Below, in pieces: positions 30,113-56,218 of a stretch of 64,000 bases of DNA. The number at the start of each line of letters is the position of its first letter. Position 1 is the stretch's first letter. Source of the DNA: Lytechinus pictus (taxonomy: Eukaryota); the NCBI RefSeq assembly GCF_037042905.1, contig NC_087246.1, positions 53,878,001-53,942,000 of the forward strand, in the 5' to 3' direction. Below the pieces are notes generated by a model that was not told the origin of the DNA, made no database searches, and worked only from the letters and a program-made list of their open reading frames with translations. Made by a program: the position numbers and the translations under genes.

Positions 30113-30144
<32 letters not shown>

Positions 30145-30281
30145 TGTGTGAAAGTCAAATTTCTTTGTCTTTTTTCAATGTTCGTAATGCGCCTTAATGC
30201 CCTCTACCTTCGACTTAATGTCTAAATGTGTATTATGATGGAATAAACCCATTCATAGACTTTGCCCTTTCGTATGACGTA

Positions 30282-30321
<40 letters not shown>

Positions 30322-30605: not shown

Positions 30606-31615
30606 AACTCTCAATCATCAAAGGGAATTCATTGAGTGATTTTTAAAGTACATATCAATTACCTTAACTTCAACTATACAGGACAGGATTCACACATATA
30701 TCAATCAAACAAAGGCTGCAGAGGCTACATGTAACATATCCTGGCTTTAAAATATGATTTTATTCCTAAATTGATATATAAAGTGATGTAGTAACAAAGG
30801 ATGGAAAAGTATGAGCACTGTTAATTGAGTCATTTCTTGAAGTGTTTTATCGGACATTGCCAACAAGTTTTGATAGGACTTTTGATCTACATTTTCTTGT
30901 AAATGTTCATAATTGATACTTAAAAATATACCAATAGAATATGTATCATATATGCTGTATATGTGCTGTTTCATTCTACAGATGTGAAGAAATTGATAAA
31001 TGTATGTTTTTAGGCCCTTTAACGAATTCCTTCTTACTTTAATATCCCCCAAAATGAACTCTTTTAGCATTGTAAGCCCTTTTTAATCATTGACAGGCAA
31101 TTCAATACCATATGTATGCCTGACCCCCTATATCTGGTGCCTTTTTTAAAGTATATTTTTCTCTGTTTTCTAGTTTGTATAAAAACTTTGTAATACTCTC
31201 ACATTCAGGCTTCAGTCATTCATGAAATGGAGAAAGAATGGGAGAAAATCAAGGCCAGACGTACAAAAAGGTTGATGATTTTATTGAATTGCCCAGAAGC
31301 TAAATTGAAGTGTGTTTTCGAACCTTTAAACACATTTATATCAGTTTTTCTGACCAGGTTCAAATGCTAAATATTCATTTTGACACTTATCTTTTTCAGG
31401 TTCTGATTATCATATATATCACTATCACTTATACTATATACATCTTGAGTGGTCTTACAGATAGTGAAAAGTTGAATCATTTTTTATGTGGATAAATCAT
31501 GTTTCAATAGAAATTTGCATTCCTCAACAGATCAAACAAAAACATGCCATTAGGTGCAAGCAGCGAAATAAAAAAATTAAGAATGGAGGAATGAAATGTT
31601 CAGGGAACAAGATAA

Positions 31616-32457: not shown

Positions 32458-34231
32458 CTATTTCTTATATATTTGAGCCATGACAGGTGGAGGATTAGTA
32501 TCGCCATTGTCCTTGATTGTTTTTAGGTAGTCAACGTAAGACGAAGGCAGGTTTGATTCTATAGCGCCCTCGATCATGACCTTCATGTAGTGGGGTGACG
32601 GAGGCTCCTCATTGGCTCCCTCTAAGTCAGGCGCCATGTGGTAGGTGTGGCATAAGTAGGTGTGGCCCTCTGGGGTTGTTACTGTGATTTCCGGTGAAGA
32701 GTATCGGTAGAGGGTCCTAGGATGAAAAAGGGGAATTTAGTAAGTCTGAAATTAAAATAATGAATGTTGGTAGTTGTACCCCACCTTTCTCTCTTTTCCA
32801 TCAAATCTCTTTGTTTGATTTTACACAATGATTTCATTAAAGTATGCACATTGGAACACCACTGAATAATAAACCGTTTGCAGGTGACATGTGAAATAAA
32901 AGAACAAGAGCAAAATAGACAACAAAAAAGATAAGAGATTGTAGATAAAGAGCGAGAAAGAAAGAAATCTGGTTCCCAGAGTTGTAGAAAGAATGTGCGG
33001 GCTGGTGGAGAAGTGTAAAGGAGAACAGAAGAAGATCGCACGTGTAAAGAAAGAGAAATATAATGGCAAAGGACATACCGAGAGAAGGAAAAAAAGGTGG
33101 GGGTTTATGAAAGTGAGAGAGAGGGTAGTGTATAACTCTTTATCCTTACGGATATAGTCCTTTGACATCAGTTTTATCCAGTCTCCATATTGCTCCCCAT
33201 ACATGAGCCTGTTGATCCTCTTCAATGGAACATAACGACCCTCTCCATTGACTCGTTTCGAGGGTCCATCCAGGGTAGCTGCGGAAATTCAATCTATAAC
33301 CCTATAAAATGAAGGGTGTGAGGTTGGAGAAAAAAGAAATAAAATTTGTTTGTAATTGCGATCTATTTTCGCACAAATTGAATTCTGTTACGTTTCTATC
33401 TCCCTCTTCCTCTCTCAAAATCTTTTACCGTCTCTCTCTTTCTCCGTCTCTCTTTATGTCTGTTTCTTTCTTTCTCTGTCTCTCTTTTACTACCTCCCCC
33501 CTCTCTCTTTCTTTTTCTCCCTTCTCTTTTCCATCCCTTTGTCTTTCTCTTTCCCATTAGACATATTAGTGTTCAGGGTATCTTGTTTGTACTTGGTTGA
33601 AAACTTTCACTTTGTTTAATAATACGAGAAAATACAATGGAATAAAATAAAACGGTAAAACGTTATACTAAGTTTGATCATCGATAAAAAGCCCCCCCCC
33701 CAAAAAAAAAGAACTTGCACCAAAAGCCAGACAACTGAGCAGCCATACCTCAAGTTTCGCTGGGCTTACAAACTCGGCTGATGGTACATAAAGATGAAAC
33801 CTCGACTTTAATAGATTGCTAGCGTAGCAGAAATAGAAGAATTTATCATTCGGAGCCCTGTAATTGAAGAAAGTCATTAAATTAAAGAAGTCAACAAGGT
33901 GCTTATGAGATAATTTCGAAGTAGCACATAGCATATTGTTTGATCAATAATAATAGGTTGCAGAGTCTCATATCCATATATAACCCCTCCCCACACCCCA
34001 CCAAAAAAAAAAAAAACAAAGAGAGAGAGAGAGACAGAGAAAAGAAAAATAAATGAGCACTTTTTGTTTTCTGTTGATGAATCCTTATTTCTTTATTGCG
34101 ATCCCACCATACACAAATTGGAATTGAATTTGATTTTTAAAATATCTCTGAAAACCTGTCTTCGCCATTCTTACGAGTTAATGTTGGGTAAAACGCGCAT
34201 ACATTATTATTGCTTACTTTTGCACACTCAT
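32458..34231 (-). CDS. GGCT-like paralog D, 177 aa, lacks the catalytic Glu (probable pseudoenzyme)
   Basis: complement join(34231-34218,33857-33749,33301-33150,32716-32458); GT-AG introns in phases 2,0,2. MSVQKAPNDKFFYFCYASNLLKSRFH...HVWGAIWRLDKTDVKGLYPTLYRYSSPEITVTTPEGHTYLCHTY...PSPHYMKVMIEGAIESNLPSSYVDYLKTIKDNG...*. Two exons are missing from the ORF track in this frame. Confidence 0.85.
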
Positions 34232-35773
34232 GGTTAAAGCTTTTTATTTTCACTCGTCACCAGTCTGGTGTTGGTGGCCCGTGTTGGTGACCCACTTCCT
34301 GAACCCCGGCAAAAACTTCTGAACATCAATGTTTGAGATCTGTGGTGGAATGAAATCACAAAATTACAAATAGACCTATAGTTGCTGAAATCGTGAAAAT
34401 TTTTAGCTAAAAACTGTAAAAGCTGAAAGCTACAATATTCCAAACTTATTCCAACTCGATCAGCCCCCTCCCTTTTTTATCTTCCGATCTTCTTCGCTAT
34501 CACTCCCCTCTCACTCATCCTCCCGCCATACTTCCACAAAGCCATCCAAATAGGATTCTCTTTTTCACCACCCCCTTGTCAATTCTCTATCCCTCCCTCT
34601 TTCTTTCCCATTTACACTCTACCGATTTTCTTCCCCGACTCCAGTACATTTTTTTTTCAACTTGAGTCATCCGTGATTGACTTGAATCATATTACAAGGT
34701 CCTCAGTGAAGAAGGGCTGTTGCTATAACTTTATATTCAAATTGAATTTCGATGTGGCATTCATAATGGCTTTATGACAAACAGCTAAGTAATGGGATAT
34801 ATGCGTATCTAATACCATACTATTCATGTACTATTATCATGGAGCTACCAGACAGGCTATTTATAGGCCTACTTACATTATAAGCACACCGACTGATAAA
34901 GGCTATATATCCACATGTACTCACCTGCACTCCTGTGGTGTCCACTTTGCTCTGCGAGTTCTGTTGTTCAAGTTGTTGACTCAACCATATCTTTGTAGCT
35001 AAACACATGAGTCCCCAATCTTATTTTATGATTGCTAGACTGGCCTACGTTTGTGTAAATTTGAAAGGCTGGTTTGTCCCGTGGATGTGAAAGGGATCGA
35101 TTAGAGGGGAGTACTGTACTTAGAGCCTTGTACAGTTGGAACAAACAACTAGGCCTATATTTCCCAAGATTGTCGTATATCCCGTGACTATAACGGGTTT
35201 GGGGGGACGGGGGGTATGACATAAACATTATAGCGAATATTAAATTCAGTGATATATCAAGTCTCGTCGAAATTTAAGTTATCACCAGTTTACATAATCA
35301 CCGATAATACCGCCCCCCCCAAAAAAAAAGTCACGCCAAGGGGAAACTCCCAGAACGAAACCCCGCGATGACAATATAAAGGGGGCGTGGCACAAGTGGG
35401 CGTGGTTCGTGGTCAGTACATTAACCTGCAGTATTACCATTAGTGCTGTGTGGTTATATTGTATCAAGTCAAAGTAAAAAATGGAAGGTATTTCTGATAT
35501 TATCACTGTGTTATTTCAACAGTATGAGGCGCTAGGCAATAAATGCCCCTTTAGCTTCAACCTCCCCATCCCTGTTCCTACCCGAGACAGACACAGCTAG
35601 CTGTCGCGGTTATCAAGCTTTAGGTCGACGTGAACTTTCATAACCCTCCTTTTTAACAGGGACCTCTTAATTCTTTATGGGACACGTCCAAGTTCAAAGT
35701 ACGATATATCAACCTATCCTTCGTATCCGTGGTAGGACAGGGTAAACAAATCTGTCACAGATAGTACCCCTAT

Positions 35774-36582
35774 CAGAGGCGTCGATCCGGGGGGCAGGGG
35801 GTGATCGCCCCACCAATGGAAATATGGGGGGGGGGGCAAACATATCGTTTTGCCCAATAATTCAGGATGTGCAAAATAAAATAAGATTGCAATGTTACAC
35901 AGAAATCGGCAAGTGAGATTGAGATACGTACGTATCTCGTTCTTTACTTAAAATCGTGCTCAAAATTTCCGTTTTTCAGATTGGAATATAAAAATTTTCA
36001 GCTCGCGCTTCGCGCTTGCATCATTTCTTTAGCAAAACCCCATACTTTTCATGATTTAATAGGTGAATAGAATGTCCCGTTTTCAGTTCTAAACCTCAAA
36101 AGAGTTCCTGCTTCGATTTGCAATAATCGTTTTCAGAAATATCAAAATTTTCAGCTCGCGCACTTCGCGCTCGCATCTATTGTTCTTTTAGATACCAATC
36201 TTAATCATTGATACCAAAAATGCTTAGAATATCAAGCTTTCAGGTCAGAATATAAAGAGATTTCAGCTCGCTCTCGGCACTCGCATTATCTGTGCAGTAA
36301 GATATGAGTCACTAAAAACAGTCAAACAGTGTTTGAGATATGTGTCTCTTTCTCATGAGTCATATATATATATATATATTAATGAGGCAAAGTGGTAATG
36401 CATTGTACTTAGTTCCAACAGTTTATTTTGAATTCCAAATTTTCGACGTTAAACATACGTCTTCCTCAGGGATACAATAAATATATATCGATATATACGA
36501 TATATATATATCGAGCGCCTTTGGAACGTTGCTTCATGATTTTGCCCCCCCCCCCAATCTGAAAAATGGATCGACGCCCTTG
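35774..36582. mobile_element. hAT-like MITE
   Basis: CAGAGGCGTCGATCC ... GGATCGACGCCCTTG; 8-bp TSD ACCCCTAT/ACCCCGAT; internal GCTCGCGCTTCGCGC repeats. Confidence 0.75.
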
Positions 36583-37995
36583 ACCCCGATACAAGGGTGT
36601 AGGCTGGTTTGAGCACGGGGAGGTGCAAATCATGGGGAGGTGGCACTAAAGTTGGGAAAATTAGCTGTTGAAAGCAGAAGAAGGGGTAACAAATTACGTT
36701 TTTGCTTATACCAGTGTCGGAACTCCTCTGCCTCAGCGGGAGGGTACACGTGCACCCAGCGCACCCCAGCCTACTCCCTTGCTATATCTCTTCTATTCAA
36801 GAAAAATCGTTTTATGTAATAGAAGCGACTAACAATGTTGTTAAGGTCAGTCTAGTGTCAACTACATGCAGAAAACACAGTAACACGAAAATAGAAAAAT
36901 ACTTTTTTATGTCTCAAATAAAATATTTAATTCATCTACAAGAATATCTATTGAAAAATGTGATAAGAAAAGCAATGAAGCCACTACTAAATTCCTTTTA
37001 TAAAAATCCGCTAACATAAAATAACCATTCGCAAAATAAATTTAATCGGTATTGCATACCTTTAAAGTTGCAATTTATAGCTGGTGATATATTTTTTATC
37101 TGAATTAGTCAGAATGAGTATTACATTGATAGCCTTTATCACACATATTAATTTTTCTTCTTTTTTTAAAAGGACACAATTTGAATGGATTCAACGTGAT
37201 CATCTAGTTTTCTGTAAAGCTGTTGTAAATTATAATTCATCCACGAAAATACTCAATCATACTCTGGAATTATGTCTGGTCATCTAGACTTACGATTTTC
37301 AAGCATACAAAGGAACTTTTCACGTACGATTCGTCCCGCCAATAACTTAGAGAACTCTTTGGAAGCATCCTAGATTGGAGGGTTAAACGCTTTATGTCTT
37401 GCTTGAGAATCATGGATCCAGATGGCCAAATTTATTATAATAATCTGCTTGAGAATTTCTGTATTGATTAGAATGATATTAAAATGGATTAATGGACCGG
37501 TATGAATATACATAAAGTCTAGCTATTTCGAAGCACACATTTTTTGTGGATTTTTTTTGGGGTCATTTTCAATAGTGTATTTTCACCTTGATCTACAGCA
37601 ACTGGTCGATGGGATCGGAGTAAAATTTCACAACTAATTTTTTGCATTCGTAGATACAGATGACCTTCATGCATCAAACATTGTTTTCTTAAGTACATAT
37701 CATTTTTACAGTATATAATTATAATAATAATAATACATATGATTTATATAGCGTCTTTTCCATTTTGATTAAATGCTCAAGGCGCTTATATAAGAGCAAA
37801 ACATAAAAGTAAAGAGAACTAAGAGAAGTACAAGAAAGAGTGAATTACAAAATAATGAGGAAAGTGTCTGTCTTCAAACCTATAGTAGGCCTACCTGCTG
37901 GTATATACGACATATAGAAACTGATATGTTGCAGATTCGGGGCTTCAGTTCACGATGCTCGATTTTTAATAGAATAGATAAAATTAAGTAATTGA

Positions 37996-39482
37996 TCATT
38001 TGAATATTTCATTCATGATATCTGGTGGGTTAGTCTGTCCATTGTGCTTGATTGACCTTAAGAACTCGACGTAGGTTTTTGGAAGGCCAGACTCTACGGC
38101 GCCCTCTGTGATGACCTTCATGTAGTATGGTGATGGAAGTTCTTCCTCTTGGCCATTCATCATCTGATAGGTGCGACAAACGTATTCCATACCCTCTGGT
38201 GACGTCACCGTGACGTCAAATGCTTTATAGCTAGATTCCGGCCTTTGAAAAATAATCACACAAAACAATGGAAATCATATAATTATTTTCTTTACTTTTA
38301 CAATTAAGAGATCTATATTGCAGTGTTGGCGCCATGAGACTCAATGGACAGTGCATGTGTTCTGCAAGTTACTCTATTATTATCTTTACCAATATTTGGT
38401 TATGTAATTCCTAATGAACCATATAGTCGTGAATTTTTTTTTTCTTTCATCTTTCTCTCCACTTTTTTAGATTCAGTATATTACTGTAAAAGTCTGTAAA
38501 AGTGTCTGGCAACATAAAGAATTTTCACTTTAGTATAACATGGCCCGTTTCCTGTGTATTTTTTCCTTGACCTGACATAAACCAAATTGAAGTGTGCTTA
38601 CGGATCTAGATTAGCCAGATCTGATTTGTGGAGACGCCATACTGCTCCCCAGACGTGACCTTGAGGACTCTCTATAATAGAGGCAGGGGCTCCGTTCCAT
38701 AGACTTTCTTTTACACTCCATCCGGGGTACACTTGAAAACAAAGTCTGTAACCCTATAAATATCGTTAAAAATATAAATATTAATGAAAAATATCCGATG
38801 TCGGTTTTTTCAAGAATTTCTTCATTAAGGTAATGCCACCATCAGGGCGGGTAAAATGTTTGACAAGCAGCAAAAATACAAATTGTTATTCAAACATAAT
38901 CCTTGATACACCCTGTTAACGGTCGTCGATCTATGGCTAGTGGCTTTGGAGTATAAAGTCGCCATGTGCTAAGTTCTAAATACCTTGATGTCTTGCTCTT
39001 TAAATACAATGCCACTCTTATAGCAAATTATCATAACAGTTTTTCATTATGAATAGCGGTCCTAGTAAATAATAACCCTTTTGCAAACTTATGAATAGTA
39101 TATTGCATACTCAATGTTATTACCTCTAGTTTAGCTGGACCAACTAGCTCCGCGGTTGGGGTACCAATGTGTATACGGGCTCTCAGCAGGTTGCTGGCAA
39201 ACCCAAAATACAGAAATGAATCCCCATCATTACTAATCAGATAAAAATAGAAAAATAAAAAAATGAAAAGGAATGAAAGACACATTATTTTGTGTATGTC
39301 ATCCGGGGTATTATAATAAGCATACATTAATATCAATGGTAAGGCCAAAATAATATAAATGAAAGGTTTCAGTACAGTATATACTGGCGGTGTTACAAGA
39401 TTCTGCATGTAATTTGTAATCAAAATGATAATTACCAAGGAATCGGTTAAATTTCAACTTACCTCAGTGCACCACTGTCCAT
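37996..39482 (-). CDS. GGCT-like paralog C, 175 aa
   Basis: complement join(39482-39463,39232-39124,38753-38602,38242-37996). MDSGALSNDGDSFLYFGFASNLLRARIH...HVWGAVWRLHKSDLANLDPPESSYKAFDVTV...CRTY...PSPYYMKVITEGAVESGLP. Phases 2,0,2. Confidence 0.88.
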
Positions 39483-42388
39483 GTTATTCTAAACAATATG
39501 CTCCTCTAAAGTATATCATCAGAAAGGGAAATTCCTTTCTTGAATAAATACCAAAGGTCTAATTGCGAATGGCCGGTAGCATGACGGAACCAACCTTTGG
39601 TCTTGTGCTGATGAAAAATAAAGATAAGTGTATTTAGTACTGCCTAAAAGAAAGGGGTGACTCTTATTATTTCAGATCACACTGGAGGATGGTGGGGGGG
39701 GGGGCATGATCATGTGTGTTTTTGGTGTCTTATCCGTCAACTTTGTTTGATTTTTGGTCAGCGTCATTTACCCCCAATCCTTACTTTTAATGTATTCATG
39801 AGCCGATCGCTAGTCGAATTTGGACAGTTTTAGGCATTATCAACCCCCTTTGATACAGATAGGCAGGCTTGGGGGCACTGTGCCGCCAAAAGTTCCGTGA
39901 CCAAATAAACAAAGATAAATGAAGATAAAACGAAAAGGAAAGAAAAGGAGAGGAAATATCATTGTTAAAATAAATGTTAAAATAAATGTTAAAATCTATC
40001 ACAAGATAGATTTTTAGTTCAAAAGGTCCATTTTTTTTTGCTTGCTCGCGATTTTAATTTTGTCACAATGCGACGTGTTGAGCCCCCCAAAAAACTGTTT
40101 AGCTCATTATGCCAGTGTGTCACACACCGAGGATCTACTAGATGTCTCAAAACAGTTTCAGTTATCAATTTTCCCCACAATGTTTTGTCTGTCTTTTTAC
40201 AATGCGGCGCCACTGACGGGTAGGGGCGGGGGCAGGGGGCGATCGTCCCATTTGATTTTTTTGTGATAAAAATATAATAAAATGAATAGCTCAAAAGGTA
40301 GTGAACCCCGCCAGAAAATGAACACATTTAAAAGTGTTCAAGTTTTGCTAGGTTTTAGATATCTAATTTTGAAGTCAAGTGATAAAATATTACATTTAAT
40401 AAAGATTGTTTCTGTGGGCCCACCGAACATTTAGTATTGTTGTCTACATTCAACTCTCAGCATAATGGAGCGCATTTTGTGCTGGCGATCACTAACTTTT
40501 GAGTACAACTGTACATGTACTATTTCAAATCGCTAGATTTATAATAGAATCATTTATTAAGGCAATGATGTTTCTAAGTCTTACGTCAACCACTCCAAAT
40601 AACTGCTCTGTACTACCTCATGGACAAGATGAAGGTCCAAAGTTGATATTCATTGAACCCTGCATGGGAGTAATACTTACTCCAATATTGAATACTTCCA
40701 CGTCCTACCACTCCCCCTCTCTTACAAGAAAATTATATAATCAAAGTCGATTTCGATTTGAGGGTCCCCATGCCTCCCCAGTGGATTTATCTAAATAACA
40801 AGATCGAAATAAATAAAATCTGTAAGTACGTTCTGCATGTAAATCCACCAATGTATTTAAATGATTCTTCTTCTATCATATGACCAAAATTGGGATTTCG
40901 TATCGACACTTTCAAAGCTCAATATCTGAATTTCTTGATAGTATTTTGTTAATTCAATCCCTTCTGCATTTTTCTTTATTTCTCCATCCTTAAATGGAGT
41001 CTCTCTCATGTACCCCCTCTCTCTTACACACACACACCCACATATCTCACTCACTCTTCCCTCTCTCTCTCCCTTTCCGTCTCTCTCTTTATCTACCCTC
41101 TCTCTCATCATTTTACCACCATCCGAAACACTATCAGCTTCCAATGAAACGAGAGATAACGATCATCAATGAAAATGGCAACACAATCATGTTTGATCAA
41201 TGCAGTAATATAAATTTTATTTCCCAGTATCTACAGTACAGAGAGGTACACACACGTTTGACATGAAACCAAATCAATTTTTGTACCGTTTCAACTTTCA
41301 ACACTAACCTTATAAAATTCATGTAAGCTAACCATGTTTTAATTTCCATATTCAATAAGCTCAACTCATACTGTACTTCATTATAATCTTGGCGCTACAA
41401 ATAATGGTATTTGAGCTAAATATGCACAGTACATGTAGAGATTAATATACAATAACAACCACTTTTCAACATATATGAATGTGTACGGCAACAGGAATTG
41501 TTTTTTTCTAAGTATTTCAGTGAAATCACAATCTACATCCCAGACGGTAATTTTCACAGCAAGAAGTCATCTTCATAAGTATATTGTTGAAAATATTACA
41601 CATGCATTTTCTTATTATTGCAAAGTCATAAAACAATAAATCTCCTGAATATATATTATCCATTGTTAAAATTATACAATTACTACATGCATTTCCTACA
41701 CAATGAGGGGAAATGCAGATAAAAACTTCCTAATATAGGGCAAGGTAATAAGTTTTCTCTGTCATGATATTCATACATTAAAATGATATACAATTTTAAT
41801 GATATAATGAGGAGGATTGGACACTCCATGAGAGCAACATTTCTAGGTTTACGAAATACAGAACATAATTAGTTGATTGTTCCAAATATTAAACACATCC
41901 AAACTGATGTAATAAACAGAACCCATGTGCCGGTGTCCCCATCTACATGTATTACAAAAATACTTCTCTCCAAGCAGAGTAATACAGAAACTACAAATAC
42001 AATGAATGAAGGGCATCATTTATTTAATTTTTTTAACTTCTTGTTTGATATTCATTCTAAAAACTATGTTATAAAAGGACCCCCAAAACAACTGAGAGTT
42101 ATTACTGTTATTTCTAGAAAAAAATTATTCAATCAATACGATAAATTAATACTGTTATTAGTATTGAATAATATATCATCATTGATAAATCAATAGTCCC
42201 TTCATACAATCCTTTGCTTTCAGTGAACTTACACTCTTTTGATTTACTTGTCATACGTGTATATAATTCAGTCAGGAAATAAATAAATATTTTGTAACGA
42301 GACTTTTCATGAGTAAATTATGCAAAACCAATCTCATTTTCACCCATTAAGAGTGCAGGAAATCCTATAGTTAAATATGGAACTTTGT

Positions 42389-42675
42389 GGGGGCATCGTG
42401 GTCTAGTGGTTATGACTCATGTCATTCAATCTGAGCGACATGGGTTCGATTCCCAGCCATGGCATGTTTTCCTTCAGCAAGATATTTACCCACATTGTGC
42501 TCAATGTGCTGCACTCAACCCAGGTGAGGTGAATGGGTACCTGGTAGGAAGTAATTCTTCAAATGCTAGAGCACCTGTAGGCAGCATGTCTGTAGCTAGG
42601 GTAATAATAATAGTATTATTGTAATGCACAGAAATTGCGCAATATAAATGTACAATTAATATTCATTATTATTAC
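42389..42675 (+). mobile_element. tRNA-derived SINE
   Basis: Pol III A box TGGTCTAGTGG and B box GGTTCGATTCC; central ACCCAGGTG..AATGGGTACC domain; (ATT)n tail; homologous to 63401-63675. Confidence 0.8.
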
Positions 42676-44614
42676 TATGATTACTTGAATAATAATTGCC
42701 TTTTACCATCTGCTTATCAATCTGCTCATTAAGAAAGATACCGCAATACCCATCAACATCAAATACATATAAAATTAGTATATATAATTGGATAAAACAC
42801 ACAAAATAATACAGTAAAGTTACCACCACGCATTAATCACATGATCAACATCTGATGTGGACGGATGTTTGCTTAACAATTGTCACACAGAGTACATGCA
42901 TTTCTAATAAATCATTCATTATCACATTACATAAACCAAACATCACATGTTTATCATATCAATTATTCCAGGCAGTATTAGTTGCAGAATTAATGTAAAA
43001 TCATAACAAATTATACACATACAGTATATATATGCATTATATACAAAATAAATTTCATCTGTATACGGTATATATATTATACAATCAATTTCTTTCAAAA
43101 ACAAGATTTACAATTAATTCTGATGGTTTTTCATCAAATCTAATTTGTGCACTTTGCTCCTCAGGTAGTGGACAAAGTATGAGTATCTTGTGCGTCAAGC
43201 TGGCATCCAAGAACAAGAGTAATAATCCTCATTATTTGGCTGTTCTTGTGTTTGTATTCATCTGTTTATATGAGCTTGCTTTTCTCAGTGACTGGCTGCC
43301 AAATCATTTTTATTAGCCTATTCCTATTTCGAAACCTGAAGGTTTTCATGGCAAACTCTAATTTACATGATTTAATCCATTTGGGGGTTCAAATTTCAAA
43401 ATACAAGAGTTTGCATTTGGTGATTCAGCAGTGAGTGGGAATCCTTCATAGAGTTCAATAGCCCTTTTACCAAATGAACATCAGCTCACACACATGCAAA
43501 GATATTGTATGCATCATAGTTGCATATCTCAATTGAAAGTATCAAATAGAGAATGAGACATGATTGTAAAATGATCAATGTATAAATAAGTTTTTAAAAA
43601 TTGTTTTGTTCAGTGTCAGAAGTGACAGAAAAACAATATTCATTCAGAGTGCAGACTTGAATAGGCCATGTAAGATCTGTAGGTCACCCTTATATGTAAG
43701 TACAATAAATAAAGATGACAAATGGAAGACGTATACCTATCACTTGTTGACCTACCCAACAGCCAAGTATAGAATTATAGCTTTAGTGAGCTTATTTTTC
43801 AGAAGTCCCCAATTTTCATGTACCTTGTCCATAATTTCTTACTTTAATCATCCCTTTTTTCCGATTTTTTTCTTCATGCAAATGATTTTATCAAAAAGAA
43901 TGGATTGCCAATTAATTAACTACATGTAAGTCCTACTACCATTAAAAAATTTTCTATCTGCACACTCCCATCCAGCAAGCATTTTGAAGAAGCTTATCTT
44001 TGTGCGAGTGGGAACATATAAAATATTACAATGTACTGAACATCACTACTGAATGCTAGCATATTTATGCCGGATACCTGCGTTACTTTTCATAATAGAT
44101 CATTAAAACATAATTCATTCACATCCTTACCATACACTTAAGTACCAGCAAATGAAATTGACTGCCCGTACCTACATAATACCGGTATGCTTCTTAAAAG
44201 TATGGCATGAATGCCCATAAAAGTTAAAAATAAGAATAGCAAAGAATAAACTAGATTCCCTAGGTAAATCTGAGACAGCTAAGTACTTATTTGTTTTACT
44301 CAAATATTAAACAAAAAGAAATAACATCACTGATTAGTTCACAATACGAATAAAAAAAGTACCATATATGATTTACCCATGAAATTGTGCTACATTCTTG
44401 AAAAGTACTCTATACATAGAATCCAACTTCCTAGAAATTAAATAAATCATTCCTATAATTTGGATTGATATCAATTGTAGGTCTATGGTGAACCATGTAT
44501 AAACAGGTTAAAATTGGTAAAATTGATTACAATATGTTGAAGAACACTGATAAGGTAGATGGAAGTGTAGGCATCATAAAAGAAAGTTAAGTAATATCAT
44601 TATTCTGGCCCAGG

Positions 44615-47600
44615 TCACGACTGAGATGTAGTAGATTTGAAGAGAGTGGCCATAATAGGAGGGGGATCCTTATCTCCGTTGTGAGGTATCGCTTCAAGAC
44701 GTTGAACATAAGAGGAAGGAACTCGCGATTGTTTGGCGCCCTCTATCAAAACTTTCATGTAATGCGGTGAGGGAGCCATCTCCTCTACATTGTCATCAAG
44801 TTGATAAGTGCGACAAACATGACTGCTGCCTTCTGGTGTTGTCACGGTAACATCCAGGACGCTGTATTCACTTTCTTGACTGAAATTATGAGTGAATAAT
44901 CAAAGATATTGATGTTATCAAGTAAAAATCAAGGTTAAAGAAATGACCAGTTAACTTATCCTTCAGCTAATAATTTATCTTTCTGAAGTGATCTGATAAT
45001 GGCTTAATCAAAATGCAATAATTCAGACATCATTGCTTCAACTGTCAAATTTAGATAAAATAACATAATCCTGAAACTCAAGGGTGACAATAAGAATGGT
45101 CTTCAATGACAATTTTTCTATTAGTGAAGCCTCCGATAATAAAATCTACTCTCGGGAAAAGGATAAAGCAGATGACACTAAAAATGTCAATAAAAGTCTT
45201 TGTATTTCAATTGAAGCTACTGCAATTAAAATGATTTGAAAGTACAAATTTTGCTTGTACTATTCCAATTTTTATCGAGATTATATAATAATTTTAATAA
45301 AACCGGGTTATAGGATGTAGCCAACCATGGGTGCATATTATATGCAAGTAATGAGTTCCTACGTCATATATACACAACTCTCCAACTGTGCATTTTTTTG
45401 TACAGCACTGCATTTGGATGCATTGGTAAACCTCTAATTCGTAAAACCACGTGACACACTAATTCATTAAAAAAGAAAGCCATGGCTAGGATTTTGGATT
45501 TTGATGATGCCTTAACTCGGGCACGTATCATACTGACTCAACTTTTGGTGTCAAATTAGAAAACGGAATAGGGCCTATTTGTATTATCTGTGGAATTTTT
45601 CAGGGCTTTTAACAAATTGCCTAGTTTTATAAAACAAATAATGTACAGGTTTAATGATGGTGTTGTGAATGATGGTCATGCTGGTGACAACACAGGTAAG
45701 CTCTTTGGTATGTTATGCTATTTGAAGCACTTGCACGTACAGTCATGCGTATACAGTTGAGGCCAGAAGTTTACATACACCCAGGAAATTCAAAGAAAAG
45801 TTGACAGTTGCCAAACATCATAAATTTACTGTATCTTATAAAATATTTGTGCTATCATGACGAATTTGATAGCGGACAGAGGAGTATGTCATGCCCCTTC
45901 ATCACATCGCTTTGTCATCAGGAGATGAAAAATATTTAGGTGTCATTTTTTCCCAAAAAATCTTCATATTTTAGACAAATTAAAAGTAAAAACTTGACAA
46001 AAACATCTCATATTTGTGCTAGTTACTTCTCAACACAAACATTTCAGATTACACCTTTTTGTTCAGTTGTGACATATCATGATAGAAAATGTAATATAAA
46101 TCATAGATTTGGAATTTATATATTTCTATGAAATTATGTTTGAAAGTGTAATAACAAACAATAGAATACATTTGACAGGAATATTACTTCTTTTCTTCAA
46201 AGAAAATTCCACCTGAAATATACTTTAATCCCAATGTCATCCCAATCATGTGAAAGAGCCTAATACGCTCTTTCATTTGATACCAAATTCGTCATGGTAG
46301 TATTTATTTTTCTGAAAATATAGTACATTTTACAATGTTTGGCAAGCGAACAAATTTCATTGAATTCCATAGGTGTATGGAAACATTTGGCCTCAACATG
46401 TAGATACCTGCAAGTTTGCTGTATAGCTACTTACAGACTCTAAACTATGCATTATTCTTTATTTAAATAAAGAGCTCTATGAAACAACTGTAGACATAAT
46501 AAAAGTAAACATAAAATGCTTAATAGATAGATGACCCACCTATCTAGGTGATCTCGGTCTGATATATGTAGTCTCCACACTACACCCCATAGATGATCAC
46601 CTGGAGCTTTCTTGATAGTAGCAGGAGCACCTTTCCAGTAACCTATCCAATCAGGATAGGCATGAAAACACAGCTTATAACCCTACATAAAAGACAATTA
46701 GTAGGGCAATGAGATGGGGGTGGGGAATCAAATACATCTCAATATGTGTGAGCATGGTGATCTAGTGGTTCTTGCTCTCGCCTGTCAATCAGAGGGTCGT
46801 GGGTCTGAATCCCAGGTATGATATTATTTCTAACGTGGAGAAGATTTACGGTTCACCATGTGTAATATGAAGAAGGGAAGGAAATATAGGCAGAAATATT
46901 GAAATTGAAAGACGAGATAGGATGAAAAGAGGAAATTAGAAGTATTCTTTCTTGAAAGTGAGTGAAGTCCTGAAAAGGACTGTAAACCAGATGAGATGAG
47001 CTGAATATGGCTTGAGTAGCGATGGTTTGAGTAGTAGCAGGATGAAGTGAAGTGCTACTACTCAAACCATCGCTACTCAAGCCATATTCCAGTTTGCAAA
47101 CATTACATGTTACTATGTTTGCAAAGCATCTGACTAGCATTCAGGTTGCCAAGAACAATCTTTGTTTAATGATTTATAATACTCCCTCATGGACTAAATA
47201 AGATGCTATGAAGGAATCCCCCCAAAGGAGGATAAACATAGCTTGGACTTTTCTTCGGTACCTATAGTGTATAAAGCCATGGTGACTTTCACCGACAGGT
47301 GACATAAGCTACTGTAATTTAATCTCCACATTGGCTGAGAGCAACTTACTTAGTGAAAACCACTGACAAAACTCTATCATGAAACAGTAAAATAAAAATC
47401 TTAAAATTCATTTTGGGTGCGTTCAATGTCGGTTTCCAAATTTAAACTGCAACATGAATGGTGATTACAAAATGCTGATATAATGAGAAACAAACGATGT
47501 GTTCAATATCCTCCATTCCCAGTCGTAAAAATAAACGTCTCTCAAATCACGATTCAGAGGAAAATTTAAACGTCGAAAAAGATGCGTTTGCAAATGCGAT

Positions 47601-48311
47601 CAGCTCAAATTTACGACCTTGAGCATCACGAATGCGATATTGAACACAATTGCGTTTTGAAACGTCTTTAAATTTGCAGTCGCACTGGAAGCCAACAAAA
47701 ACAGGAGCCAGAACTGACCTTTCTTGTGATGGGTCAAACTGAGCACTAAAGCTGCATTCACGAAAGCGGGAAATTTAAAGACGATCAACATATAAACGGC
47801 TTTATATTTTCGACAATGAACGGTGCACCGCTGATCGTGTTTGTGTTCGGTCTTTTGGAATTGAGTTTTTAATCATGATTCATGTTGCTGTTTAAATTTT
47901 CAAATCGACATCGAACACACCCTTACTTTGGGGATCTTAGGTGGCTGTTCACAAATTATCATTTTCAGTTACCATAGTTAATCATAGACCAGTACTGCAA
48001 ATCAAAATCAAGGATTTCACTGAAATTGTCCACTTTCATGAAAATTCCCTGTAATTACTACCGTGCTAAAAATGAAAGTGAGAATGTACCTCAAGTTTAG
48101 CTGGACCAACTAGCTGCGCAGTAGGATTGTGCACATGAATCCTAGCTTTCAACATGTTGCTACCGTACCCAAAGTAGAGGAAGGTATCATCACTACTCCT
48201 GATAATAAATGACAATAAAAGAAAATAGAAATAATAATGCAGCTTATCTACTCTGCACAGAGTTCTCAAGACACTGGACTCATACTTTATTCCCACTGTC
48301 GTGCAATCCAT
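44615..48311 (-). CDS. GGCT-like paralog B, ~180 aa
   Basis: complement join(48311-48286,48198-48090,46682-46540,44879-44615). MDCTTVGIKSSDDTFLYFGYGSNMLKARIH...HLWGVVWRLHISDRDHLDSQESEYSVLDVTV...CRTY...PSPHYMKVLIEGAKQS. The first mini-exon is less certain than the others. Confidence 0.87.
45754..46400. mobile_element. Tc1-like MITE in a GGCT-B intron
   Basis: TA|CAGTTGAGGCCAGAAGTTTACATACACC ... GGTGTATGGAAACATTTGGCCTCAACATG|TA. Confidence 0.75.
46749..46830 (+). mobile_element. Degenerate tRNA-SINE head (another remnant at ~14687-14790)
   Basis: GGTGATCTAGTGGTT...GTGGGTCTGAATCCCAG resembles the head of the 42389 copy. Confidence 0.45.
47415..47922. mobile_element. PIF/Harbinger-like MITE
   Basis: ~45-bp imperfect TIR GGGTGCGTTCAATGTCGGTTT... 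/ ...AAATCGACATCGAACACACCC; flanks TTT/TTA. Confidence 0.6.
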
Positions 48312-48568
48312 TATGATTGACCTTTTGTAGCTGATCGCAAATGTTTTTGAGCCATCCAAATTTTTTCTTCAATCAAAATGATTGCCACGACCGACCTCAA
48401 GATCTGATACGATCACTACGATTATTCCACGATTTAGACCATGGTTTCAATCGTGGCGCGAATCACGACAGTAGGGCTAGGTATCGCAAAATTAGAGAAT
48501 TCTATAGTCAAGGGGATATATGTATTTCAGACTAATATTTTGTACCGAATGTATCTGGGATACCACAT

Positions 48569-48670
48569 GGATCTGTCCACGGAGGATTATCAATTGTTAC
48601 TAGGAGTGCTGTGATAGTGCTCAGCAGTGCACCCCCAGTAACAATACAATAATCCTCCGTGGACAGGTCC
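48569..48670. repeat. ~100-bp hairpin between GGCT-A and GGCT-B
   Basis: GGATCTGTCCACGGAGGATTAT / ATAATCCTCCGTGGACAGGTCC (21/22 paired), with an inner TTGTTACT/AGTAACAA stem. Confidence 0.7.
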
Positions 48671-49124
48671 CTGGGACACAATGGAACTCACTTTTGTGTT
48701 CAAACTCAGCCCAGTATAATTACTCATCCAATAACAGGTTGACTGTTGCAATGGGCTATGGCATCATACAGGACACCCACAGTGTCGTGCCAAACACTAA
48801 CATGATGGATAAACTAACAATCTTTGGGGGCAGTGTTACAGCTCGCCGTCTCTCTACAAATTTGTGCTTCATGACATAAGTTAACAAGAAGAACAAGTTT
48901 CTACTTTTAATACACATGTGACAAAGGAACAGATTGAGGTACAAAATGAAGAGCCAATAAATTGTCCAGAGTGAATTAAGCACCATTTAAGTATCTAAGT
49001 GTCAATCTATTGTTGATCAAATATCAATTATGCATGAAATTCACTAGTATGTGTAATAAAACATCTCAATTAGTGTAATTTAAGTGTAAATCAAATGTCA
49101 GTTAAGTATTAATCTGTACATTTC

Positions 49125-52100
49125 TTACTCGGTATCGATTAAATTCATGATTTCCACCTGTCCGCTGTATCCGTTATCCTCAATCGATCTCAGCCATTCA
49201 AGGTAATACTCAGGGAGAGAGTTTTGATCGGCCCCTTTCCTGATCACATCCATGTATTGAGGTGAAGGGGTGCTCTCCTTAAAGTCTATTATGCTGTATG
49301 TCCAACATGTATGACGGGTACCATCTTGTGATGTCACAATGACTTCCTTTCGTCTGTAAACAACGCCTTTACCCTCTTGACTGTAGTGAGTTAATACAGA
49401 ATACAATGGAGAGATAATAGGGAGCTATGTAGCATTTGTAAGAAATTATACACATTGATATTCTGATTGAGTTTTATTAAGTACTCATTCAAATATTTGC
49501 AAAAGTATATTACACAAATGAATGACACAAACTACAAATACATAGAATTTAAAAGAAAGACCACAGAAATTTTGAAATCTTGAATACAACTAGTGTAGTA
49601 AGTTTCAAAGGTACACCATAAACTTGACGTTTCGACAAGTGTGTTCTTGTTGTCTTCATTTATTTTCCCAAGAATTTAAATGAGAGTTGAGTTATCATCC
49701 AAGTTGCTAGAAATCTGGGGTTTTCTATTAAAGCTTTCTTGTGTATACATGCTAAATTCAGGTCGCATTAACTGCAAACAATCAACCAGTTTAATGACAT
49801 ACTGCAGTTTATCTATGATTTAAAAAAAAAGGTCGATGACAACCTGAAAGCTTGCCACACATAGCCAAAAGTAATATTTACGAACTGGATAAACTACTCT
49901 CAGGTAAAAAAAAAACAATTATATACCGTATTACTTCATGTATAATAAATCATTGTACATTACTGCATCTCTATTATTAAGTTGTAGGATTGTAAATTAC
50001 TAAATCTCTATTAGGTTGTAGGATTATTACCTACAAATAAATTTGAGTAACCAGACCTACATAACAATAGAATCAACTTACAAATCCAGACTTGCGAGAT
50101 CCTTTTCCTCCAATCTCCACACTATGCCCCACACAGAACTCCCATTCCTTTCTTCAACAGTAGCGACACCACCATGCCATCTATCACTCATCCATTCGCT
50201 TTGTCCTCCAAAACATAGCTTGTGATCCTGAAAAATTGAAAGACAAGCCACAAGAAAGATCACACCATTTGAATAGAAATTATTATGAAGCACTTTTAAA
50301 GTTTCCTAATTAATGTAAGACAGGTCTTTCTTGCCTCTTGGCATGAATGAAAACAATGAAATCAAGTCCAAGACAAGAGGAATTGGATGAGTGGGTCGTC
50401 AACGTCATCATCATTCATGGTTGTGGGGAAAAAGGGAAGATATTACAGCCTCTAACTTAGACCAAGAGCTTCGGTCTCTGTTATGTTGGTTGTTCCGCTG
50501 AACTCTGTTGGCTCCACTCACCAAATACAGAGACCAAAGTTCTAGCTTGATCTGTACAGGGACTCAATGGCCATATGTTTACATATCAAGTTCGGATAAA
50601 ACTGGGAAGGGAAGTGAAGTTGCGCGACAGCTGAAGTAAGTCACTGGTTTTCCCACTTTTAAGTTTATTTTCCCCCGTTTTGGTGCATTTCAGGCCAAAA
50701 CGGAATAATTTCTATTTGGGTAGTTCTTTTTATATATGTTTATGAAATAAAGACAAAAAATCGATGAGCCCCGTCGGGGGGATTTTGCATTGTTAACCCG
50801 TCTGTGTACGAGGAGAAATTAAAAAAAAAATGTTTAAAAACTCCTCGAAACAGACGGCTGCCAGCTGTCTAGATCTACCTCAGTCTTACTTAGAGAGGTA
50901 GATTTACACATTTAAAATATTATTCTTCTTGAAATTAATTCTCATTTGTAAAATGTTTTATTATTAAAAGGTAATTAGTATCAACTATAATTAAGCCTAG
51001 GCTAGACATAGGATGGGGAGTCGGGTGTCCGGACAGTTTATATTCTTGAGGCCTTCTTTTTTGTCTTTGGATTGCACTAAAAATATGAATTCGATAGTTG
51101 TAATCATCTTATATTTTGTTCTCTATAATATTTCCTAACATTTTGTAATAAAAATTGATGAAATTTCACTTGTAAATTTTTCCAAATGACGTTCTAAATT
51201 GATCGTCCGGACACACAACAACTGGGTATACCAGTAGTATGGTAGTGGATCGTATTACCGAACGCTTTTCATGAATTCAATCATATCAAACACATTATTC
51301 TCATAAAATTCACCAAACTTTCACCATAAATACACAATTACCTACAAAATATAAATATGTAAAAATTTTGCCGAAATCGTTTTTCCTTTTTACGATATTA
51401 GCTTCCAATCGGACCCCTCTTCGCATGTGAAATATTTTGGTCACTTGAAAAAGGTATCGTATTACCGAACATGTGTTATCTATGGGAAAATTTGAGAAAA
51501 CAACAAAATCACTGATTAGCTATTTTGACCATATTTTATTATTCTAAGAATATTAAGACTTTGAAAATGTGTTTTTTTACAATTTTTCATCATCTTTCTA
51601 TTCAAGTTCTCTTTGGAAGGATGTTGCAAAATTTTGAGCGTATGAAATTATTTTCTGATGCGTATGATGCGCGCATTCGGTAATACAAGGCCGGTCGGTA
51701 ATACAATTACTCACTATACACCCGAATATCGCCCGGTAGGATGGGGGGTTGGGTGTCCGGACACGTAACAGAAATGAAGCCTTGTTTTTATCTCAGGAAT
51801 AAACCAAAAATATAGGTTGAATAGTTTTTTTTCACCATCAATATTTGTTCTTTATAATATTTTCTTATATTCTGTGCTAAAAAGAATTAAAGACATTGCT
51901 TGTAAACTTTTCAAAATTGAGAGTAACGTCATGTGTCCGGACACCCAACCCGTCCGGACACACAACCACTGGGTACAGGCCGCTATCTACGGTGAGCCAA
52001 ACGACAGTCACTTAACGCCCAACGCTGCGGGAGGACTGTCTGTTGAGTTCCGATGAAATAAAATTGTTTTACCTTTAATTCTGCGACGTCAACAAAAACA

Positions 52101-52198
52101 GCAGACGGGTTTTTCAAGTGAATTCTCTCTTTCATTAGATTACTGCCATATCCATAATACAAAAATGTGCCTTCAGACCCTCTTGAAGTTTCGTCCAT
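49125..52198 (-). CDS. GGCT: Gamma-glutamylcyclotransferase, canonical copy A, 175 aa
   Basis: complement join(52198-52073,50227-50082,49380-49125). FLYYGYGSNLMKERIHLKNPSAVF, WHGGVAT, VWGIVW, LDFQEG (catalytic Glu), PSPQY...GA.QN.LP..Y closely match vertebrate GGCT motifs. Confidence 0.92.
50458..50871 (+). mobile_element. TAGAC...GTCTA element, copy 3, in GGCT-A intron 1
   Basis: Colinear with 3556-3986; flanks CCTCTAACT/GATCTACCT (6/9). Confidence 0.75.
51007..51977. mobile_element. Two direct copies of a TGTCCGGACA-bearing MITE (51007-51230, 51737-51977) flanking a GTATTACCGA-bearing MITE (~51235-51718)
   Basis: The two outer copies share the start TAGGATGGGG.GT.GGGTGTCCGGACA and the end GTCCGGACACACAAC.ACTGGGTA. 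The middle segment has inverted GTATTACCGA/TCGGTAATAC motifs. Confidence 0.6.
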
Positions 52199-53910: not shown

Positions 53911-56218
53911 CATGCAGACTTGGAGCAGAGTACATGGATGAAATAGAGTTTATCTACCTGGATGAAATGGAATGTCAGTTTGTCAGTTCTGTTCAGTGGC
54001 GTACAGATGGGAGGGGGGAAGCTTGGGGGTGCTTGCTCTCCCCAATTTTTTACGACCAAGAAAACAAAAGAGAAAAGATAACGTATTGGAAAGAGAATTT
54101 GTTTATGATTTTCTGATAACTTTATTTAGGTTGTGATTATAATGTTTTAAACAAGAGATGGCGCTAAACCACTTACCGCAGACGAACTGCAGAATTGCAG
54201 CAGAGTATATACGGATGAAATCATGAGAGGTTTATCTTCCACCTCAAAATGGATTAAATGGAATATCAGTTCTGTTCAGTGGCGTACAGATGGAAGGGGG
54301 GGGGGGGGCTTTGGGCTTGCTCCCCCCAAATTTTAATGACCAAGAAAACAAATGAGAAAAGAAAAAGGATAGGAAAGAGTTTATGAAATAGAGATGGTTT
54401 ATGATAATATTTTTTTGAATATTATGTCAAAATCTGCCACAAAATTGGATTTTTGTAATAGAAATGTCGATTTTTCTTTTTGCCCGTTCGCTTCGCCCAC
54501 TTGCAACTTTTTATCAATTTTGCCTGAAACGCCATATTTGGTCACCTCAATATTTTGGGCTCATTACGACACTCTGGTTCTGCTTCAACCTGTAGTTGTG
54601 AGTCAGTCGTGAGATGGTCGGGTCGTATGAGGTGTCCGGTAGCCTTATACTTAGGGGTGAAAAGGGGAAAAGAGGGGAAATGGAAAACAATCGAGGAACT
54701 GAAAGAAAGAATTAGAAGTGAATGGTCAGAGCTATACTGCCCAACTTTGGCAAAAGGAAGCAAGTGCCCACATCAGTCAAATTTGAGTTATTGTTGTTGC
54801 TGAAATACCCTTTGTACGTTGCACGTTCGGACAAAAAGTTGGGGAAGAAATTATCGTTCTATGGAAAGATATTGAAGAAAATTTGCTGTTAAAATGCATT
54901 GACGCCTATGTAAATGACGTTCACATCGCTCATTTACGACAAATTATAGTTTTGTCACTTGCTTCCTTTTGCCAAAGTACGGCAGTATATACCCTATTAC
55001 TCAATAACAGAAAACACATTTTAATGCGTGTATACTTGCCCACCCCTATATCCTTACGCCATCCCTGACTGTACAGTTTATGCCTAGAATATACAACGGC
55101 TACATGGATAACATTAATTTCCAATATTTGGACTAATTAAGCACTATGATGGATGTGGGCATAATATCAAATTCTTGTGTGATCTGTAATAATAATTATG
55201 CTCGTCACAAAAAAAAGTCATGAATCTCATATATCTATATTTTTTTCTTTGGCATCATTTACACATCCTGACATAGGCTAAAGACTGCGAAAAGAGAAAA
55301 ATTAAAATTTCGCTTATTTTCACAAAACAATTATTATTCACTGAATAGATTACATGCAAATGCAAATAAGACGGGTGATGTCATACAGCTATATACTTCT
55401 TTTTCAATTTTTGCAGGCAATCACAATAGGTTACAACATTGACAATGCAACTGAGAAGGAGTCAGACCTCGTTTGTCATATGATCTTGAGGAAAAAAACA
55501 ATATATTTTATTGCTATATTGATGTAAATAGTAATTGGGAGACGTCATTGGTTCATGACCAAGATTTTTTTTAATCAAGTTAAACTTTGAAATTTCATAA
55601 CTTTGTTATTTTATTAGGTTTTGACTTTTGATGAAATTTCAAGCATTTATAATTATGCTTGTACATTTTTATATCTTTTATAATAAGTTTTGTTAGGGCG
55701 GACTGAACTCGCCCTTATAATTAGTTCTAAATTTATGATAAACACGTTATATTTTCATTAGGCCTTTATGCCATCCCGTTGACTTAAACTTATATACATA
55801 ATAAATGATTAATAATTATAAGAATGGAGCATATGAAGTAACACAGGAAAATAAAACAACTTGATAGTATATTTTTAACTATTCCGAAACATTGACATTT
55901 TATACTTTACCTTATGATAATAGGTTACTTTTTACCTTATCTCAGGGACACCAAATACATTCGCCCTAAAAAAAACCCTGCTACTAGCAAATGTATTTCA
56001 GGGGATAAATGAGTAATATTTGCAATGTAAATGAAATGAATAAGATATTTAAAAAATCGTAGACAAACAAGTGAGGCAAGTGAGCTGCATCTGTCTTTGG
56101 CACCAAGATCCAGATCCCGACCTCTCTTGTTCAGAGTGCGCGCAGTCAGGTAGCAGACGTTTTGATTGCTGTTTATACAGCTACTGCACTGTACCGATCA
56201 GATCTTTGCAACAATGCA

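Follow-up and report, generated by a model that had tools for sequence, protein, structure and literature searches.

The window analysed here is a stretch of 64,000 nucleotides (nt) from the sea urchin Lytechinus pictus (assembly GCF_037042905.1, contig NC_087246.1, positions 53,878,001 to 53,942,000); coordinates below count from its first letter unless another sequence is named. Stop-free segments and splice sites reveal four GGCT units of the Pfam family AIG2_2 (PF13772) in it, here called A, B, C and D, all on the minus strand and with canonical GT-AG introns. The four domains are encoded by three genes, or transcription units, and not by four: A and B are spliced into a single tandem protein, while C and D are genes of their own. 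The reading favoured here, with fairly good confidence, is that this cluster is common to Lytechinus and Strongylocentrotus and consists of a 346-amino-acid (aa) A-B tandem, C, and a D unit that lacks the catalytic glutamate and is probably a conserved pseudoenzyme.

The last exons of all four units exceed the PF13772 cut-off of 27 bits (A 52, B 55, C 50 and D 47 bits). The best sequence match in the PDB is human GGCT, with E 3e-44 for A-B and 5e-27 for D. A and C are each 175 aa long, and D has 177 aa. Pairwise identity is 35-42% between A and the others and 48-58% among B, C and D. These three have a 109-nt exon in common, and C and D also share one of 152 nt. Relative to A, the catalytic loop of B, C and D is 3 residues shorter, and YP[DG]W and [DN]PP motifs are present.

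Matches to PF13772 in the 812-Mb L. pictus genome are confined to this cluster and a near-identical second copy on contig C25. Matches of the GGACT type (PF06094) occur elsewhere in the genome in local groups (C1:21280276-21297665 and C3:56617986-56623674). The group on C1 holds 3 matches within 17 kb, one of them with an internal TAG.

The features of the A-B gene are as follows (a slash within letters or between positions marks a splice site).

52073..52198, minus strand: A-B exon 1; coding sequence (CDS) from the ATG at 52198; carries YGYGSN; the spliced CDS translates to XP_063951242.1
50082..50227, minus strand: A-B exon 2, 146 nt; RNA contig joint 49380/50082 in both runs (X1 and X2)
49129..49380, minus strand: A-B exon 3, the last exon of A; catalytic Glu93 in FQEG; donor GA/GTAAGA at its end
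49125..49127, minus strand: TAA of the would-be stand-alone A, at intron positions +2 to +4 of the donor; spliced out
48090..48198, minus strand: A-B exon 4, the 109-nt exon of B; phase-2 acceptor; FGYGSN
46540..46682, minus strand: A-B exon 5, 143 nt; YPDW
44615..44879, minus strand: CDS of A-B exon 6; Glu261 in SQES; DPPP; stop TGA at 44615-44617; the 3' untranslated region (UTR) runs below 44615

When spliced from the window, this CDS encodes 346 aa and is exactly RefSeq XP_063951242.1 (LOC135153149), a protein composed of A, one Glu and B. The fusion is possible because a strong 5' splice site lies across the TAA stop of A. The final codons of A are ACC GAG TAA, and the letters GA/GTAAGA form a strong donor that overlaps the stop. 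Splicing at this donor deletes the stop and links A to B in one reading frame; the GA that is left is joined in frame to the single G at the phase-2 acceptor of the 109-nt exon. The donor gtaagaaat, with its embedded TAA, is kept in L. variegatus, in S. purpuratus and in the C25 copy.

The features of C and D are as follows.

39463..39482, minus strand: CDS of the mini first exon of C; ATG at 39482; 20 nt; MDSGAL + AG; donor GTAAGT
39124..39232, minus strand: C exon 2, 109 nt; FGFASN
38602..38753, minus strand: C exon 3, 152 nt; YPGW
37996..38242, minus strand: CDS and stop of C exon 4; Glu96 in PPES; NPPD; no GT donor at the stop; the product is XP_054763955.2
34218..34231, minus strand: CDS of the mini first exon of D; ATG at 34231; 14 nt; MSVQ + AA; donor GTAAGC
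33749..33857, minus strand: D exon 2, 109 nt; FCYASN
33150..33301, minus strand: D exon 3, 152 nt; YPGW
32458..32716, minus strand: CDS and stop of D exon 4; LYPTLYRY loop; Leu94 at the position of the catalytic Glu; NPPP

C and D are separate four-exon genes (175 and 177 aa). The C protein read from the window is exactly RefSeq XP_054763955.2. The N-terminus of D, MSVQK, matches the 177-aa RefSeq D protein of the second cluster copy, which has 5 differences from the D of the window.

To compare the units between species, their coding sequences were rebuilt from L. pictus, its C25 copy, L. variegatus and S. purpuratus. Exon sizes do not differ among the three species or between the two L. pictus copies. 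Ratios of nonsynonymous to synonymous substitution (dN/dS) were calculated by the Nei-Gojobori method between Lytechinus and Strongylocentrotus, where the synonymous distance (dS) is 0.7-1.1.

A: dN/dS 0.09-0.12, protein identity 79-82%
B: dN/dS 0.18-0.21, protein identity 74-77%
C: dN/dS 0.11-0.13, protein identity 81%
D: dN/dS 0.057-0.064, protein identity 87-89%

For L. pictus against S. purpuratus, the ratios are 0.12 (A), 0.18 (B), 0.13 (C) and 0.064 (D), at a dS of 0.7-0.95. Purifying selection acts on every one of the four units, most strongly on D, which is also the unit whose active site has changed most.

Human GGCT has a YGSL-type loop and uses Glu98 as its acid/base residue (PMC7022552). 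In the urchin units, read across the splice junctions, the substrate-binding motif is YGYGSN in A, FGYGSN in B, FGFASN in C and FCYASN in D. Within it, the YGS[NL] loop is YGSN in A and B and becomes FASN in C and YASN in D, a change of Gly to Ala seen as well in a few more family members whose Glu is retained. The catalytic loop reads LDFQEGKGVVY in A, LDSQESEY in B, LDPPESSY in C and LYPTLYRY in D.

The active-site columns were taken from an alignment of 63 rows; they are those in which 75% or more of the 51 other family rows agree. All catalytic columns are intact in B. C differs in 2 of them (Ala for Gly in YGSN and Pro for Gln next to the Glu), and D in 5 (Ala for Gly, Cys for Ala, Tyr for Asp, Thr for Gln and Leu for Glu). 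The acid/base Glu is Glu93 in A, Glu96 in C and, counted along the fusion protein, Glu261 in B; D has Leu94. In this column, 98% of the 51 other family rows have Glu. The six D rows all have Leu and form the only clade among the 63 rows without Glu. When D is aligned to human GGCT with HMMER, either a gap or the Leu stands opposite Glu98.

With these residues in place, the A domain would form 5-oxoproline from gamma-glutamyl amino acids, as human GGCT does, and can be expected to be an ordinary enzyme of this kind. B and C are probably active cyclotransferases as well. Because their pocket loops are changed (YP[DG]W and the shortened loop), their substrate range is probably different.

D would be unable to perform the acid/base step of the family. 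With LYPTL in place of LDxQE the acid/base Glu is gone, and the family mechanism should be closed to it. At the same time, the predicted structure retains the GGCT fold. The model of D has a predicted local distance difference test score (pLDDT) of 91 and a predicted template modelling score (pTM) of 0.88. Superposed on human GGCT (2I5T, 3CRY and 2RBH) it gives template modelling (TM) scores of 0.87-0.90 at a root-mean-square deviation of 1.9 Å. D thus combines several features of a pseudoenzyme: a lost Glu, a fold that is predicted to be kept, spliced cDNA in Strongylocentrotus and the lowest dN/dS of the four. D is probably a pseudoenzyme that has been conserved in a non-catalytic role, as a binder or partner.

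Alternatively, D could still be enzymatically active, as a cyclotransferase or otherwise, with another residue serving as acid/base or with a different chemistry in that pocket. Such a role would suit the most constrained unit of the cluster (dN/dS 0.06), whose fold is intact in the model. Catalytic residues can also move within the GGCT fold, since ChaC2 has been reported to use two alternative glutamates (PMC7022552). Yet Leu is fixed in every D row at a position where the rest of the family almost always has Glu, and the adjoining Asp and Gln are lost along with it. The remodelled loop (residues 91-100) is also where the model is least confident (pLDDT 68). An active D is therefore judged rather unlikely, and the pseudoenzyme is preferred.

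The joining of A to B can be followed in RNA. For L. pictus, two runs (X1 and X2) were available as Logan contigs, along with two raw-read runs. The contigs of X1 and X2 skip introns at GT-AG and therefore derive from spliced RNA. One contig of 1676 nt (X2) and another of 960 nt (X1) connect the A exons with the B exons. The joints seen in each run are 49380/50082, 49129/48198, 48090/46682 and 46540/44879. The 1676-nt contig extends from A exon 2 through B exon 6 and then continues colinear with the genome beyond the stop of B. The X2 contig is colinear from 44879 to 44550, with 576 further letters beyond. Directly 3' of the stop of A, contig depth is zero. In the two RNA runs the sole joint into the 109-nt exon of B comes from the last exon of A (49129 to 48198). 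As no other joint leads into B, and the stop of A is skipped, A and B are one transcription unit.

The fusion can also be found outside the RNA of L. pictus. A profile search of 1.8 billion proteins returned sea-urchin models with two GGCT domains, and RefSeq holds 346-aa entries named 'uncharacterized protein' for L. pictus, L. variegatus and S. purpuratus. From another urchin, a 1208-nt cDNA contig with an unbroken 346-aa open reading frame (ORF) falls into six exons on the S. purpuratus locus. In a more distant urchin species, a cDNA contig passes from the last exon of A into a B-type domain. When the whole A-B protein is modelled with AlphaFold, both domains reach a pLDDT of ~89 and the pTM is 0.59, so that the prediction gives the two domains no fixed arrangement. 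Human GGCT is a homodimer, and the two domains of A-B might conceivably copy such a dimer within one chain.

Five segments in the introns of A-B (45714-46489, 46684-47071, 47848-48041, 48624-48817 and 49594-49787) have contig depths of hundreds to thousands. Raw reads fall on them on both strands, and loose ends are frequent. They appear to be copies of interspersed repeats that are transcribed but lie outside the GGCT transcript.

If the four units were instead four independent genes, B would need a promoter and a phase-2 mini first exon of its own. Mini first exons of that kind are present in C and D. A candidate for B begins at ATG 48311, with 26 nt and a GTATGA donor (MDCTTVGI + AA/GTATGA), 87 nt upstream of the 109-nt exon, and a rare isoform starting there could escape the contig evidence. 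However, the L. pictus RNA contigs hold no splice joint that uses this exon, position 48198 being joined solely to 49129 in both runs. The candidate exon has no match in the A-B intron of S. purpuratus, and A-B is a single ORF in the RefSeq models of three species and in two cDNA contigs. Independent genes for A and B are accordingly considered improbable, and the A-B fusion gene is retained.

The opposite possibility is that the whole cluster is one long gene encoding an A-B-C-D polyprotein. The 704-aa S. purpuratus RefSeq model XP_030831451.1 joins all four units in this way, and a weak GT lies beside the TGA stop of B (TC/GTGACC), in phase with the acceptor of C. Several observations are at odds with such a product. 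The A-B contig of L. pictus continues unspliced past the stop of B into 3' UTR, and the stop of C is without a GT donor. C and D have conserved start exons of their own: in S. purpuratus and L. variegatus the MDSGAL exon of C recurs with equal geometry. The mini first exons of C and D are unlike each other, and a DNA comparison of the regions upstream of B, C and D for shared first exons gave only chance-level matches. In Strongylocentrotus, D cDNA contigs from two runs carry two 5' UTR exons of their own, located between C and D; D has a promoter of its own. At the S. purpuratus locus (AAGJ06000008.1:7499637-7530879), the C-D linker of XP_030831451.1 is part of one of these 5' UTR exons (24646-24693), read as coding. 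For Lytechinus, no three- or four-domain model was found. The cDNA contigs and the conserved MDSGAL start exon indicate that XP_030831451.1 is chimeric, and a polyprotein is very improbable next to the three separate genes.

From their altered active-site motifs and their place next to the canonical copy, it might be suspected that B, C and D are duplicates in decay (pseudogenes or noise of the annotation) and that only one GGCT of the cluster is real. Selection and transcripts already refute this: reading frames and splice sites are intact in both L. pictus copies, in L. variegatus and in S. purpuratus, dN/dS is 0.06-0.2 at a dS of about 0.7-1.1, and spliced transcripts exist of both B (within A-B) and D. 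Decay is regarded as next to impossible.

An earlier note on this DNA, made from its letters, had described four same-strand GGCT paralogues, and four minus-strand units above the PF13772 cut-off do lie where it placed them. The exons it listed as shared (109 nt in B, C and D; 152 nt in C and D), the shorter loop and the YP[DG]W and [DN]PP motifs were all found. Its count of four genes has to be corrected to three, since A is spliced to B in the RNA contigs and RefSeq models. Of its protein lengths, those of A, C and D stand (175, 175 and 177 aa), and B as an independent gene of ~180 aa does not. Phase-2 mini first exons had been proposed for B, C and D; those of C and D exist, and that of B has neither a splice joint nor conservation behind it. 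The note had also let A keep the housekeeping role. For a stand-alone A enzyme this finds no support, since A appears solely in fusion with B in the RNA examined.

The history of the units was examined with an IQ-TREE phylogeny of 60 domains. B, C and D form a clade with support of 100/100. C and D are sisters within it (99/89), with B as sister to the pair (87/60), and at the base of the clade lies the B-type domain from the distant species. A groups with a GGCT of Diadema (100/98) and, more weakly, with vertebrate GGCTs. The stem of D is long (0.51) and its crown short.

At the Diadema antillarum locus (JBFRCO010000378.1:373672-398509) there is a three-exon A-type GGCT whose stop (ATA TGA) lies outside any donor. 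No B, C or D unit was found within 10 kb of this gene, in a search of this locus only, and the neighbours differ (UPF0547 and BCNT). An A-only locus in Diadema fits an expansion inside the echinoids.

A possible order of events follows from three features: the acceptor position shared by B, C and D, the unrelated mini exons, and the fact that the earliest-branching B-type domain is already fused. Together they suggest that fusion came first and C and D later. The ancestor of B would have been captured by splicing from A, through the donor of A. C and D would have arisen afterwards from B-type exons that took up unrelated mini first exons. A fuller reading adds to this order that D is a dead but conserved binder of gamma-glutamyl compounds or 5-oxoproline, or a regulatory partner of the active units; it is offered tentatively, as something that may well prove wrong.

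Part of what the earlier note said about the evolution of the cluster is borne out. Its binding-motif and catalytic-loop sequences for A-D are correct across the exon junctions. The stepwise change of the active site that it saw is present in the alignment, with B intact, 2 columns changed in C and 5, including the Glu, in D. The tree (A,(B,(C,D))) was recovered, with the support for B/C/D and C+D given above. A lineage-specific GGCT expansion is supported. The note had looked to dN/dS near 1, or to an absence of transcripts for B-D, as signs against its proposal. The values found were 0.06-0.2 instead, and spliced transcripts were found for A-B in L. pictus and for D in Strongylocentrotus.

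The closest known system is human GGCT (C7orf24; PDB 2PN7, 2RBH, 3CRY and 2I5T), which belongs to the same Pfam family and has the same fold as A-D. Over 160 residues it aligns with the A domain at E 3e-44, with the YGSN loop and the QEG glutamate in place. Unlike human GGCT, the canonical domain of the urchin is the first half of a two-domain protein. It is also accompanied by three further diverged domains, one of which (D) is without a Glu equivalent to Glu98. GGACT (PF06094) and ChaC1/ChaC2 have the fold, a YGSL-type loop and the catalytic Glu in common with GGCT (PMC7022552), but they are far more distant and match the D model weakly (TM 0.4-0.5, 13-17% identity).

Two-domain GGCT proteins are also predicted in other animals, namely Arctia plantaginis (CAB3240960.1), Bombyx mori (LOC101743698), Scleropages formosus (isoform X1) and Ptychodera flava. 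In the tree, the two domains of these moth, silkworm, arowana and acorn worm proteins pair with each other or with their own lineage. By this placement they are independent events, and some of the models may be annotation fusions of tandem genes. Multi-GGCT-domain predictions thus recur in unrelated animals (tiger moth, silkworm, arowana and acorn worm), and one such prediction of 1956 aa has 12 matched stretches.

In sea urchins, the RefSeq loci LOC135153149 of L. pictus (along with XP_054763955.2 and the 177-aa GGCT-like proteins), LOC121407523 of L. variegatus and LOC577509 of S. purpuratus are the same genes or their orthologues, with equal order and exon structure. Their entries are automatic predictions, named 'uncharacterized protein' or 'GGCT-like', in which the stop-in-donor fusion, the loss of the Glu and the pattern of selection are not recorded. 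As annotation, then, the cluster is already known from RefSeq in at least 3 camarodont species. A literature search for sea-urchin GGCT, LOC577509 or GGCT tandem duplication found no relevant paper. The novelty of the array is reduced, the same cluster in L. variegatus and S. purpuratus being present already among the RefSeq predictions. Three features appear to be undescribed: the fusion through a stop within a donor, the finding that the RNA studied held no transcript of a canonical GGCT on its own, and the constrained paralogue without Glu.

The second copy of the cluster in L. pictus lies at C25:975600-1000700, on a 1.49-Mb contig, and corresponds to 30000-55500 of the window. It is 92-99% identical, including introns and intergenic DNA, and dS between the copies is 0.03-0.09. 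The copy is probably an uncollapsed second haplotype rather than a duplication. Because RefSeq annotates both copies, the genes appear doubled. Within the C25 copy, ~1.4 kb of the B-C spacer is repeated (window 40865-42231 matches twice). In L. variegatus, RefSeq has two near-identical A-B loci and two C proteins on the 84.6-Mb chromosome CM031016.1, where the cluster is either truly duplicated or doubled by the assembly.

The surroundings of the cluster also appear to be shared. In L. variegatus a Metallophos gene is called directly upstream of A-B, and in both L. variegatus and S. purpuratus a TSNAXIP1-like gene is called directly downstream of D. In the window, open frames at 56162-56581 (plus strand) and 60004-60471 (plus strand) carry motifs that resemble those of a metallophosphoesterase. 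Both neighbours are likely to be present in L. pictus too (compare 56162-56581, 60004-60471 and 12542-31000, all plus strand). At 26054-26194 a gap of 141 N bases breaks an acidic, His-rich open frame.

Several points weigh against the account given here. The mapping of L. pictus RNA covered a single 6-kb stretch, at A-B. Logan contigs show presence and not absence, so a minor A-only mRNA or a B-only start may exist, and the raw reads of the two runs put few reads on the exons, too few for isoform counts. No C cDNA was found in any species examined, the C-type contigs being colinear with genomic DNA. The existence of the 704-aa S. purpuratus model means that some read-through may occur. The activities of A, B and C, and the lack of one in D, are deduced solely from the residues present, and the Gly to Ala change by itself says little on activity because it occurs elsewhere alongside a kept Glu. 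Finally, the fusion-first order depends on a single node with weak support (87/60).

As a rule, GGCT is regarded as one simple enzyme within the gamma-glutamyl cycle. In L. pictus, the only GGCT-family genes found are a conserved three-gene, four-domain set. Its canonical domain is seen only fused to a diverged one, and its slowest-evolving unit is without the catalytic residue. In practical terms, the gene count is corrected and the chimeric 704-aa S. purpuratus RefSeq model is flagged. The A-B gene provides a clean example of gene fusion by means of a splice site that lies over a stop codon. The cluster also offers a natural series of active, modified and dead units for asking which residues set the specificity of GGCT, with D as a clear candidate pseudoenzyme for testing. 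If the fuller reading is true, urchins of at least Lytechinus and Strongylocentrotus would have a multi-component gamma-glutamyl system with no stand-alone canonical GGCT.

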